In this document: one piece after another, positions 42,901 through 53,342 of the stretch
Position numbering within the stretch: the first letter of the stretch is position 1
Layout: each line of letters starts with the position of its first letter
DNA from: Ministeria vibrans ATCC 50519
Lineage: Eukaryota; Protista; Filasterea
NCBI GenBank assembly: GCA_943704425.1
Contig: CALSCP010002675.1
Span: forward strand, 43,709 to 104,227
DNA: 60,519 nucleotides
Direction of reading: 5' to 3'
Notes under the pieces: model-generated
Seen by the model: the letters and a program-made list of their open reading frames with translations, nothing else
Told to the model about the DNA's origin: nothing
Databases searched by the model: none
Program-made: the position numbers and the translations under genes

Positions 42901-45900
42901 CTCGCACAGCGTGCCCGTGTNNNNNNNNNNNNNNNNNNNNNNNNNNNNNNNNNNNNNNNNNNNNNNNNNNNNNNNNNNNNNNNNNNNNNNNNNNNNNNNN
43001 NNNNNNNNNNNNNNNNNNNNNNNNNNNNNNNNNNNNNNNNGGGGGGAGGGGGGGAGGAGGGGATCAGCTCCAATATCTATAACAAAATAGTCCGTCAAAA
43101 GGTGAGTGTCCGTACTTCGTCAAAGTCTGTCTCGCATGTGGTTCCAGTAAAGCCGACGGAGCAGAGACAGCCAAAGTTGGGGGCGGTCGTCTCGAAGCAT
43201 GTTCCGTCGTTCTCGCACGGGCTCGACAGACACTCGTTAATATCGGACTCACAGTGGTCACCAGTGAACCCCTCCGCGCACGAACAAGTGTACGAAGCAA
43301 GCATGTCCACGCAGGTCGCACCATTGGAACAAGGTAAGGAGGAGCACTTTAAAAAGTGAGAGAGAAAAAGAATGAAAATTAATATAAATGCAAACCATGC
43401 CAAAAAGTATTGACAGAATGATTTTCCTACCTCATCAATGTCCGACTCACAAAAGGGTCCGGTAAAGGCTTCGGAACAGCTGCACGTGTGACTCCCAGCT
43501 GATGTGGTACCACTGTCAAAGCGTGCATTGGGACCAAACCGACCGTTGGCATTGGTTGAGAGAGTACACGGGCCAGCCTCCGCCTTGGCCACCGTGGCAA
43601 CGTTGGAGCACAAGATGCGTTCGTTGAGCGTGACGCTTGAGAAGGAAGCGCTCGTTGTTTCAAAAACGTACTTGTCGGCGAGGCCCGCACTTGAATAAAG
43701 TGCTACCAGCTGGTATTTGGTGGAAGCCAGCAGGGTCACGCTGCTCGCGAGGGTCACCCAGCGAAAATTGCCCTCGAGTGTATCCGACGACGAAACGGAT
43801 TCACTTGCGAGCACCTGACCATCCGACTCGCGTATCAACGCCACGGTGTGTGCTGCAGCAAGACCGTCTGCGTCGTGGTCGTAGAAGCCAAGTGATGTCA
43901 GCGAGAGCACAGCACCTCCGTCGGTAGTAAAGGTCCAGCCCAACATGGTGTCCTCTGCCAGGTCGGTGGCACTGAGTCCGGTCGGCGCAAACGTCATTGC
44001 ATCCAAGGCGATCTTCGAAGTGATACCCGTGTCGCACACACCACCATTGGCACAGGGTGATGAGGCACACTCGTCCATGTCAGACTCACACACATCCCCA
44101 GTGAATCCCTGTGCGCACGCACACGTAAACATATCTGCCATAGGCCCATCGACACAGCTTGCACCGTTGCTACACGGCGATGACACACATTCGTCCATGT
44201 TTGACTCGCAATGGTCACCAGTGAAGCCCGCCACGCACGTGCACATATACAGGTTCGCAGTCACACTTTCCACGCAGGTACCGCCATTGGTGCACGGTTG
44301 CGAGTCACACTCGTTGATGACACTCTCACATGCATCGCCCGTGAATCCTTCAACACATGTGCACACAAATAGATCTGCAGTTGCACTGTCTTGGCATGTT
44401 CCGCCATTGCTGCACGGCGACGATGCACACTCGTCAATGTTCGACTCACAATCGGAACCGGTAAAGCCCGCCACACAAGTACATGTGTAGGAGGCGTCAC
44501 CGTCGACGCAAGTTCCCCCGTTGGAGCAAGGCAGGCTTTGACACTCGTCAATATTCGTCTCACACGACTCGCCTGTAAAGCCAACATGACACACACACGA
44601 ATAAAGGTCGACCAAGTTGCTTTCAATACAAGTGCCCGCATTGGAGCACGGTGACGACGCGCACTCGTCAATGTCCGACTCGCACCAGCTTCCTGTGTAC
44701 CCGGCCGAGCAAGCACAGTCATACCCGTCCACATCATCAGTACACGTCGATGCAGAGGTACACGGCGACGATTCACACTGCAAAATATATGTATGACATT
44801 AAGAAATAAATAGAGAATCGTGAGCATTATTATTATAAATATAATGACGATGATAATAATAATAACAACAACAACAACAATAATAATAATAATAATAATA
44901 ATAATATACAAGAACGTACTTCGTCAATATCAGTCTCGCAGTGAACACCGGTAAAGCCACTGGCGCATTCACAATCGTAAGAACCGTCAAAAACATAATG
45001 GAAGGCAAACGAAGGTCCAATGCGTGCCGTGTCAGCGTCGTTCGAGCAGGTGATGCACACGTCAGAACTGGCGGCGTTGTCGCAGAAACATGACGCCTCT
45101 AGGGTTACCCCTGCGTTCGTAGTCACGATGACACTACCTCGCAGGTACTGGTCGGCTCCGTTCGACGCAAATGCAAAAATAACGTAGGAACCGGCGGAGA
45201 GGGTGAGAGGACCGGAAAGGGTTGTGGTGGTGCGGAAGGGTGAGTGTGTCAGCGGATCGGACGGGGAAACAGTGCCCTCCGCATACATCACCGTACCACT
45301 ACTGTCGTAGACGCGCACTACATGGCTCTCGCTAATTGCCCCTCCCGACCCAACAAAGGCTGCATCGTACCAACTGAGCGCGTCGATGACAATCGAACGT
45401 GCCACACTAAACTTCCAGCCCACTTGACGGGGACTCGAGCCCCCTGCATTGTTCAGCGTGCCGCCCGTTGCCGACCCAATCGCCTGAACAGTAGACTCAT
45501 CGTCGGATCGCTCCACACACGTTGCCCCATTGAAACAGGGCGAGCTAACGCACTAAAAATAGAGAAACATAAATAAGAAAATAAACAGATCGAGAGATGT
45601 ACTCAATGTCAAAACAGACAATAATTATAAATTTTTAAAACGAAGAAGAAAATAAAAATAAAAATTGAAAAAAAAATAGAAAAAGAAGAGATAATGCAAA
45701 AGAAAGAGAATAAAACACGTTACCTCGTTGATGTCAGATTCACATTGATCGCCGGTGTAGCCTGTGCGACAGGTGCACGAAAAGAAGTTGGGCTGGCTTC
45801 CCTGATCACACGTGGCCCCATTGGCGCAGGGTGAGCTATCACACTCGTCAATGTCATTCTCGCAGATCGAACCCGAGAAGCCGACGGCACACACACATGC

Positions 45901-51900: not shown

Positions 51901-53342
51901 GAAAGTCGGAGATGGGCGAGAAGGCATTAAGAGCACATGCGGAACCGGAGTCGCCACCGCTGATGAGCATGCCGAGGAAGCCCAGTTGAGTGTCGACAGT
52001 CTGCTGGGAGTAAGGGGATGACGTTTGGGCGGAGGCCTCTTCGTGGCAGGATGACACAAGAAGACTGCTGCCACCGTCCCACTGAAAGGGGGTGTCAAGT
52101 GTGACACGGGTCCATGGCGAGGCGGGCGTGACGGAGCCCGAGAAGACGAGTGTGGCCGCCGAGTCGTCCTCAAATTCCGAGCTGAGGGTCGACGCGGAGC
52201 TGTGCATGAAGTAAATGTTCATGGCGGAGAGCGGATCGGCCGCCACGGCAAGGTTGTAGCTAATTTCTGTAATTTCCGCACCTGCTACCAGACCAAAATT
52301 GAGCAGTTCGTCGGCACGAAACAACATTTGGTCACGGTAGCGCGTCTGAACACGTCGGAAAGAGCAGTACAGCGGAGTGCTGGCCGTGGAGCCGCCGGTA
52401 GACGTGGACACTTCAGTACCACTGCTAACCAGTGGTGTGAAACAAGTAGCCCCGTTCATGCACGGCGACGAAGTGCACTCAATGATGTCTGTTTCGCAGA
52501 CAGCGCCAGTGTAGCCCGCGACACACGAGCAGCTGAACCCGCCTCCTCCTGTCTCGCTACAAACGCCCGAGAAGAGGCATGGACTGCTGTCACACTCACC
52601 TACAATTAATATACATTCAGATGTGATTTGATGAAGGGAGCGTCAATGTTATGCGTAGGAGCTCAAGGGTGCGACGAAGAGATTGCGTGTTTTGACATGT
52701 AGGGAGTATCAATGCTATGCATAGGAGCACGAGAGGGCGATGAAGAGAAGAAGGTGAAACCATGAAAAAAAAAAAAAAAGCTCCTTCGCCTCATTGTCGC
52801 GGGTGCGTCGATTAAAAACGGAAACCGTCGCACGATTTGAACAGATATGTTTTCAATCTCACAATGTGCGTTCGAAGAAGACGAGAGGGGGAACTCTAAA
52901 GTGTAGATCGAGACTGCCGTAAAAATAGCTGTGGGAAACGAAAAAGAGCTTGAAAAGGCGTTGATTGACACCAATGCATGGTGTTGGAGGGCGCGCGCGA
53001 GGCCAGCAATCGCAAATGAGATCGTGAAGAGAGGTGTACGACAAGAAAGGGCGGGTCATTTTGCGCGGAAAGAAGACGGCCCGATAGTTTCAAAAGTGAA
53101 CGATGTTGTAGGCGAACAGATATCATGCGCGAGAGAAAATGCGTCGCGTCCCCAGGTGGCGAGTCAAACCAACAATGTAAGACAAGTGGATACTCATGAT
53201 CTAAGGCGAGCAACATTCCGAGCACACAAAGTGTGCTCCTGAGAAAAGAGAGATTTGTTACGCTACCTGCCGCAAAAGCAGACGGAAGTGTCGCGAACAG
53301 CACGACCGCCAACAACCATTCGTGGCGGGCGGGAAGCCTCAT
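36997..53342 (-). CDS. Giant type-I transmembrane protein: signal peptide, ~70 calcium-binding EGF repeats with 5 inserted beta-sandwich domains, Cys-rich (GCC2/TNFR-like) segment, ZU5-like domain, TM, long low-complexity cytoplasmic tail
   Basis: Signal [24 protein letters not shown]; repeated DIDECxSxPCxNGGTC..CxCxxGFTGxxC over at least 12 exons; [22 protein letters not shown]; [29 protein letters not shown]. An N-gap at 42921-43040 hides one junction, and the 5' splicing is uncertain. Confidence 0.85.
42921..43040. other. Assembly gap (N run) next to a G-rich tract
   Basis: N run. Confidence 0.99.
47390..47755. repeat. Long (AAT)n/(TTA)n microsatellite in an intron
   Basis: Directly visible, with a short N run inside it. 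Similar tracts at about 36630-36780, 44830-44905, 48390-48430 and 57190-57355. Confidence 0.9.

Follow-up and report, generated by a model that had tools for sequence, protein, structure and literature searches.

Predicted jelly-roll domains of likely bacterial ancestry nested in EGF repeats of a giant membrane protein of Ministeria vibrans

A giant gene on the minus strand of a 60,519-nucleotide stretch of the Ministeria vibrans ATCC 50519 genome (contig CALSCP010002675.1, positions 43,709 to 104,227; hereafter the window, in which coordinates below are given) encodes a protein built of epidermal growth factor (EGF) repeats, five of which are interrupted by large additional domains. The arrangement is best explained, with a probability of roughly 70%, by an EGF rod on which jelly-roll domains of bacterial ancestry are displayed sideways in a ligand-binding role. 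The protein envisaged would be a very long surface protein in which a signal peptide precedes about 70 EGF repeats and a single membrane helix is followed by a long disordered tail; the tips of five Cys3–Cys4 β-hairpins would each carry a complete jelly-roll β-sandwich of approximately 180–200 amino acids. The EGF rod would continue unbroken and the inserted domains would project laterally, as L4 domains do in laminin. Both insert families would have entered the eukaryotic lineage by old transfer from bacteria, the composite module of split EGF plus domain would then have multiplied to occupy some 60 positions across numerous giant EGF genes, and the inserts would act as binding heads for glycans or particle surfaces along a stiff stalk.

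Interruption of EGF repeats between Cys3 and Cys4

Inserts of 181 to 197 amino acids, all in frame and free of stop codons, interrupt five EGF repeats between the third and fourth cysteines (Cys3 and Cys4), and every insert lies within one exon, continuous in frame with both EGF halves. Insert 1 represents a family without a name and inserts 2 to 5 resemble the Pfam family DUF4082 (see below). The split repeats, their inserts and the evidence for each are as follows.

51815..52477, minus strand: split EGF repeat hosting insert 1, with Cys1–3 and Cys4–6 flanking
51851..52441, minus strand: insert 1, 197 amino acids, unnamed family of predicted β-sandwiches (own-genome copies, bacterial relatives, AlphaFold2 (AF2) model)
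48581..49195, minus strand: split EGF repeat hosting insert 2 (flanking cysteines)
48617..49159, minus strand: insert 2, 181 amino acids, DUF4082-like, two-cysteine subtype (alignments A1 and A2; own-genome profile, E 7e-54)
46453..47097, minus strand: split EGF repeat hosting insert 3 (flanking cysteines)
46489..47061, minus strand: insert 3, 191 amino acids, DUF4082-like, four-cysteine-cluster subtype (alignment, genome profile)
44938..45552, minus strand: split EGF repeat hosting insert 4, an intron ending directly before its Cys1 (flanking cysteines)
44974..45516, minus strand: insert 4, 181 amino acids, DUF4082-like, four-cysteine subtype (PF13313, 28.2 bits, E 2e-6)
43449..44069, minus strand: split EGF repeat hosting insert 5, the modelled unit (AF2 model m35dfd59b49e4)
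43485..44033, minus strand: insert 5, 183 amino acids, DUF4082-like, two-cysteine subtype (BLASTP to protein P0077, fold neighbours)

The initial annotation, made by reading the sequence alone, had described five domains interrupting EGF repeats at this very place, and the in-frame limits given here fall within about 15 bases of those it proposed, with Cys1–3 and Cys4–6 motifs on either side of every insert. The N-side junction was of the form C-x-SSPC-x-NG-x-x-C (Cys1–3) and the C-side junction of the form C-x-C-x-x-G-[FY]-TG-x-x-C (Cys4–6) in all five cases. The position two residues before Cys4, aromatic in four of the five split repeats and His in that of insert 5, corresponds to the consensus of calcium-binding EGF (cbEGF) repeats, which places the break at the tip of the hairpin rather than through a strand. 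Similarly, in flanked alignments of both insert types (13–14 paralogues each), the six EGF cysteines formed invariant columns and the consensus residue two before Cys4 was aromatic. The GC content of third codon positions was 0.53–0.67 for the inserts and 0.58–0.68 for the EGF exons, as compared with an overall GC content of 0.06–0.35 for the introns; the host-like values of the inserts indicate real coding sequence.

Recurrence of the nested modules in the genome

Profiles built from the genome's own copies detected at least 39 DUF4082-like places on approximately 20 contigs and at least 21 places of the insert 1 type on approximately 9 contigs, the latter often in the same genes as the former, which puts the composite module at about 60 occurrences genome-wide. 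Both EGF halves flanked the insert in frame in 31 of 36 DUF4082-like copies examined; three others were flanked by the C-terminal EGF half, with an intron or a leader on the other side, and two were unclear. All 14 of the insert-1-type copies examined were nested at the same Cys3–Cys4 site. Since the same split-EGF junctions flank these 31 and 14 copies, their presence in the window is not a matter of chance. Two paralogous loci (L052 and L026) were matched at 99.8–99.9% identity, with few single-nucleotide polymorphisms, on contigs of independent metagenomes (ENA SCHR19-1 and JGI 3300040761), which argues against an assembly chimera and indicates that the organism or a very close strain lives in the sampled environments.

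A few copies departed from the usual pattern. Flanks without the usual split-EGF junction were noted at L005 (G000:C2772:622-1041) and L050 (G000:C2358:19407-19778), one of which is followed by ..YQCLQSPCQSNPC.. while the other has non-EGF sequence upstream; these could be un-nested or degenerate forms. At L003 (G000:C2169:32589-32981) and L044 (G000:C2169:5939-6367), an intron lies exactly at the junction of Cys3 and insert, which might be a trace of domain insertion by exon shuffling. In the gene at L009 (P0028, G000:C642), two nested DUF4082-like domains occur together with a long stretch that is not EGF and gives a faint Laminin_G_3 (concanavalin-like) signal.

Assignment of inserts 2 to 5 to the DUF4082 family

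Inserts 2 to 5 align with one another at 25–33% identity and have the motifs GW.F, LG..D, H.V, FR, Y and GP.F in common, in agreement with the mutual homology first proposed for them. In an alignment of 14 genome copies (A2), invariant F, L, H, D, G and P columns were seen together with the motifs GW.F, LG.YD..DGL, H.V, FR, D.Y and GRFGPNF. Against PF13313 (DUF4082), for which the gathering score is 28.4 bits, insert 4 fell just below the cut-off (28.2 bits, E 2e-6), 9 of the 14 paralogues matched at E≤0.01 (best 8e-12) and six genomic places scored above the cut-off. Neither insert family matched an NCBIfam entry, no relatives of the insert 2 region came out of a word-based protein search and a literature search on DUF4082 (PF13313) found nothing relevant.

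A profile of the 14 copies, run against 1.84 billion representative proteins, gave 7964 matches at E≤0.001, of which 4021 reached E≤1e-10. Among the best 150 of the 7964, four were fragments of the same organism and the rest, where inspected, had bacterial features. Thirty-two of these 150 were PEP-CTERM-anchored proteins of approximately 200–570 amino acids (one of 1806), most of them about 210 amino acids long and consisting of a signal peptide and one domain; others were giant proteins with SASA or GDSL esterase, chitobiase C-terminal, FG-GAP or myxobacterial cysteine-rich repeats. Retrieved proteins P0077, P0079, P0086, P0006, P0004 and P0003 scored 34–145 bits on PF13313; their matches spanned almost the whole profile, with whole-protein E values down to approximately 1e-31 for single-domain and 1e-77 for multi-copy proteins. 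From the near-threshold score of insert 4, the matches of its paralogues and the retrieval of bacterial DUF4082/PEP-CTERM proteins by the profile, inserts 2 to 5 are assigned to the DUF4082 family, as the initial annotation had suggested.

The DUF4082 relatives visible in these searches span Armatimonadota, Verrucomicrobiota, Acidobacteriota and Gammaproteobacteria. P0077 is encoded on a contig of a Chthonomonadaceae metagenome-assembled genome (MAG), with relatives in Verrucomicrobiaceae and Acidobacteriaceae MAGs; these named genomes were obtained with P0077 as query, and a search for related loci with a single eukaryotic copy gave no bacterial locus. In pairwise BLASTP, P0077 was 39% identical to one eukaryotic copy (4e-29) and 30% identical to insert 5 (4e-17), a closeness equal to that among the eukaryotic paralogues themselves, and the top bacterial relatives of the PEP-CTERM type ranged from 30 to 39% identity over approximately 150 amino acids. 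Likewise, a paralogue held out of the profile (P0127) scored 112 bits, level with the top single-domain proteins of bacteria.

The eukaryotic domains resemble those of bacterial PEP-CTERM proteins in the motifs GW.F, LG.YD..DGL, H.VG.W, FRY and GRFGPNF and differ from them in setting, as the bacterial domains are terminal or in tandem rather than nested and are either PEP-CTERM-anchored or fused to SASA/GDSL esterases. They also differ in cysteine content. Eukaryotic copies fall into two subtypes, with an extra cysteine pair (inserts 2 and 5) or quartet (inserts 3 and 4) near the C-terminal end, whereas P0077 is devoid of cysteine and most bacterial matches are cysteine-poor. This difference suggests that disulfides were gained after the move into a eukaryotic secreted protein.

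Insert 1 and its relatives

Insert 1 matched no Pfam or NCBIfam family, and no match to the family of inserts 2 to 5 was found by hhalign once the EGF flanks were removed; an apparent match between the two insert families was rejected, being due to the EGF half alone. Five relatives (P0158 to P0162), at 25–27% pairwise identity to the eukaryotic copies, were found by profile-assisted word searches. In four of the five, the domain is N-terminal and comes straight after a bacterial signal peptide, and one of these four adjoins a gene with a Por_Secre_tail (type IX secretion system) domain. In the fifth relative, the domain follows an FN3 domain within a large protein rich in FN3, further regions of which, without a Pfam match, we take to be MAM or choice-of-anchor-like. 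Both cysteines of the family are kept in P0160, the one bacterial relative aligned. The initial comparison of this insert with secreted proteins of Bacteroidota holds as a lead, in view of the relatives with signal peptides and the neighboring Por_Secre_tail gene, and the family itself is still unnamed. A further lead came from a protein atlas, in which the nearest look-alikes were Bacteroidota and tailed-phage clusters. The best match of the insert 1 model in BFVD was an uncultured Caudovirales protein (Foldseek E 2.5e-8, template-modeling score 0.64, 22% identity). P0159 and P0161 have a near-identical N-terminus of 55 residues (one substitution) followed by different downstream domains and are possibly surface proteins that vary behind a shared leader.

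Predicted fold of the inserts

AF2 models of split EGF plus insert, built from paralogue alignments, were all-beta and confident in the inserts of both types, with a predicted local distance difference test score (pLDDT) of 85.7 and a predicted template-modeling score of 0.80 for the insert 5 unit (m35dfd59b49e4) and a pLDDT of 82.3 for insert 1. Foldseek against PDB gave no match for the DUF4082-type model at E≤0.001, and a wider VIA search was needed. In a structural neighbor search over 48,161 PDB representatives, neighbors were found at Z 9–10.6 for the insert 5 model and Z 9–11 for the insert 1 model, and those common to both models at Z 8–11 over 130–170 aligned residues. They included the PHR domains of MYCBP2 and BTBD2, the lectin-like domain of Cwp84, the N-terminal domains, similar to carbohydrate-binding modules (CBMs), of a carbohydrate esterase and a polyvinyl-alcohol esterase, phage phi812 baseplate and Bxb1 tail-tip proteins and a PBCV-1 capsid protein. 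Both insert families are thus predicted to have the same PHR/CBM-like jelly roll, and the β-sandwich fold anticipated from the sequence is borne out by the models and PDB neighbors of both types.

The likeness to PHR, Cwp84 and esterase domains (Z 8–10.6 over approximately 140–155 residues, root-mean-square deviation 3.1–4.3) was one of structure and not of sequence, as Pfam searches were empty and PDB profile searches with both families found no solved sequence relative; a fold in common with PHR and CBM-like domains does not show a common function. In both models, DSSP placed short strands beside Cys3 and Cys4, and the EGF disulfides 1–3, 2–4 and 5–6 would remain intact across the insert.

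Comparison with laminin and significance

The initial annotation did not recognize the architecture from characterized proteins, yet there is a clear precedent. In laminin and perlecan, L4 domains, which are CBM-like β-sandwiches, are located between Cys3 and Cys4 of laminin-type EGF (LE) modules, and the LE rod is thought to run on unbroken past L4 (PMC5338690). The protein described here is like laminin and perlecan in having a globular CBM-like β-sandwich between Cys3 and Cys4 and a long rod of EGF-type modules. It is unlike laminin in several respects: the host is an ordinary six-cysteine EGF repeat instead of an eight-cysteine LE module; the inserts belong to DUF4082 and to an unnamed family whose relatives are bacterial, instead of to L4 (Laminin_B); and there are five inserts per protein and approximately 60 per genome, in a membrane-anchored protein of a unicellular eukaryote rather than in the animal basement membrane. 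No insert matched Laminin_B (PF00052) at E≤10. A search with PF00052 across the genome was also without a match, as were the control queries of that search. The possibility that the inserts are Laminin_B domains was rejected, since the inserts lacked a PF00052 match and the hosts are six-cysteine EGF repeats. A literature search on nested EGF designs in protists found nothing relevant. What is new compared with laminin is therefore the ordinary EGF host, the other insert families and the roughly 60 copies; the nesting design itself is known.

The practice of hanging a globular domain from the Cys3–Cys4 hairpin is accordingly not confined to animal basement-membrane proteins, and here it is used on a large scale, with ordinary EGF repeats as hosts and with inserted domains from at least two families that are otherwise known from bacteria. 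It constitutes a natural case of repeated domain-in-domain grafting that protein engineers could copy and is probably also an instance in which eukaryotic surface receptors took up bacterial domains. DUF4082 and the unnamed family of bacterial secreted-protein domains, both of which lack a solved structure and a known function, are thereby placed in a eukaryotic setting for the first time and gain a structural model.

Function of the inserts

The inserts are most likely laterally displayed ligand-binding heads on a calcium-binding EGF stalk; the adhesin, lectin or prey-capture function put forward initially is conjectural. An alternative, which we regard as unlikely, is that they are structural rather than binding elements, a role suspected for L4 and LF of laminin; they would then determine how the rod bends, is spaced or packs sideways, or let the protein coat associate with itself. 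This alternative draws on laminin, where L4 and LF domains coincide with rod bends (PMC5338690), and on the conserved residues (GW.F, H, FR and GRFGPNF), which are shared with bacteria and could be core residues. The observations that favor binding heads also count against a structural role: most fold neighbors serve in binding, among them CBMs, lectin-like domains and proteins of phage tails or baseplates; bacterial homologues either stand alone, anchored at the surface, or are fused to carbohydrate esterases; and two unrelated families occupy the same site, which fits display better than a single structural need. The partner domains of the bacterial homologues (SASA and GDSL esterases, chitobiase C-terminal) suggest a carbohydrate context, while the similarity of the insert models to CBM and lectin-like domains is at the level of fold only (Z 5–10). 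That a nested design of this kind is physically viable follows from the laminin L4 precedent.

Several points weigh against an EGF rod bearing binding domains of bacterial ancestry. L4 of laminin, the closest design, and LF have no known ligand (PMC5338690). The EGF halves were modeled with moderate confidence (pLDDT 56–77). Inserts 2, 3 and 5, three of the four assigned to DUF4082, had no direct Pfam match and thus did not individually reach significance there. Inspection covered the best 150 of the 7964 profile matches, which carried no taxon labels, and the tree described below was poorly resolved and was built from matches picked by a eukaryotic profile.

A broader proposal is possible though rather doubtful, namely that at least 60 or so modules taken from bacteria, and possibly from phages, form an "EGF display" repertoire for recognition of bacteria, prey or partners, with the Cys3–Cys4 hairpin as a general, evolvable docking site.

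Origin of the inserts

A bacterial origin of the inserted domains by gene transfer is likely, although not proven. In the matches listed, the closest relatives of both insert families appear to be bacterial, which is the outcome that the initial annotation had expected of a transfer. The size and diversity of the bacterial DUF4082 family and the absence of other eukaryotes from the visible matches favor this origin. In a quick maximum-likelihood tree, 11 of 14 eukaryotic DUF4082-like copies were placed beside PEP-CTERM proteins, with weak support and without a root; a single origin of the eukaryotic copies is compatible with this tree.

It is considerably less probable that the domains are old eukaryotic inventions, vertically inherited in this lineage, or that transfer was from eukaryotes to bacteria. 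Such a history would be in keeping with the fully host-like composition of the inserts and the spliceosomal introns of their genes, from which it follows that any transfer was old, as well as with the weak deep support and missing root of the tree and the restriction of inspection to the best 150 matches. It must be set against approximately 8000 homologues, the visible ones of which, beyond the organism's own fragments, show bacterial features; diverse architectures and several phyla among visible DUF4082 homologues; the location of the eukaryotic copies within bacterial diversity, next to PEP-CTERM proteins; and the lack of another eukaryote among the best 150 of 7964 matches.

The last alternative, that the inserts are absent from the mature protein as an assembly chimera, bacterial contamination or a spliced-out cassette, gains something from the fragmented assembly (2860 contigs) and the N gaps inside the gene and is nevertheless very improbable, given inserts that run on in frame into both EGF halves within a single exon, an insert codon composition that is host-like and unlike that of the AT-rich introns, some 60 paralogous copies with the same junctions, two such loci reproduced by independent metagenome assemblies and conservation at the protein level across the entire insert.

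The host gene and protein

The EGF-rich gene is multi-exon and was traced from approximately 53342 to 36997 by reading of open reading frames (ORFs) and translations. The gene model is incomplete, with N gaps near 43000 and 47500, and searches were performed with single exons or single domains rather than with a joined spliced protein. Its main features beyond the inserts are the following.

36997..53342, minus strand: whole gene, encoding a giant type I membrane protein with approximately 70 EGF repeats (ORFs, translations, Pfam)
53268..53342, minus strand: putative first exon with a predicted signal peptide (...SAFAA; sequence reading)
39040..39108, minus strand: single transmembrane helix (translation)

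Frames from approximately 52640 down to 37000 translate as a nearly continuous series of EGF repeats, about 70 by count of the C-half motif (Cys4–Cys6) and mostly of the calcium-binding type. Only EGF families (PF00008, hEGF and EGF_CA) were found by Pfam in the EGF exons, which identifies the hosts of the inserts as six-cysteine EGF repeats. Ten introns were placed, all in phase 0, each located directly behind a ..D-I-D-E motif and ahead of the next repeat's Cys1; their lengths range from 83 to 458 nucleotides and their GC content from 6 to 35%, versus 50–60% in exons. A phase-1 intron (53266-52600) would join the signal-peptide exon to the first EGF repeat. In the last exon (43098-37000), the EGF array ends and is followed by a short cysteine-rich stretch, a run of six arginines, the membrane helix and a low-complexity cytoplasmic tail of approximately 800 amino acids that ends at 37000.

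Long arrays of hEGF and cbEGF repeats in a single-pass membrane protein are also a feature of Notch, Delta and Crumbs-type receptors. Unlike in those receptors, LNR, NOD, ANK, DSL and LamG domains were not found here (Pfam scan, C-terminal exon); for LNR, NOD and ANK, the exon searched was of 1957 amino acids and included the juxtamembrane region and tail. Identification of the protein as a Notch receptor was rejected because Pfam found EGF families without LNR, NOD or ANK, and the "Notch-like" label given to it initially is appropriate for the EGF array only. Animal receptors of the Notch, Delta and Crumbs types are not known to have domains nested inside EGF modules.

Three minor features of the region were also noted. 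The run of six arginines, at approximately 39210 (minus strand), is juxtamembrane, just upstream of the membrane helix, and is possibly a convertase-type cleavage site. The 458-nucleotide intron (47326-47783, minus strand) consists almost entirely of an AAT-type microsatellite (6% GC) and holds an N gap; the remaining introns are likewise of low complexity, with CT- or AT-rich repeats. Directly upstream of the putative start of the EGF gene, a neighboring gene (53483-55111, minus strand) has a low-complexity product that contains a helicase-associated (HA)-like motif (..WLRRLSELEDFQNEYGHTNVP..).

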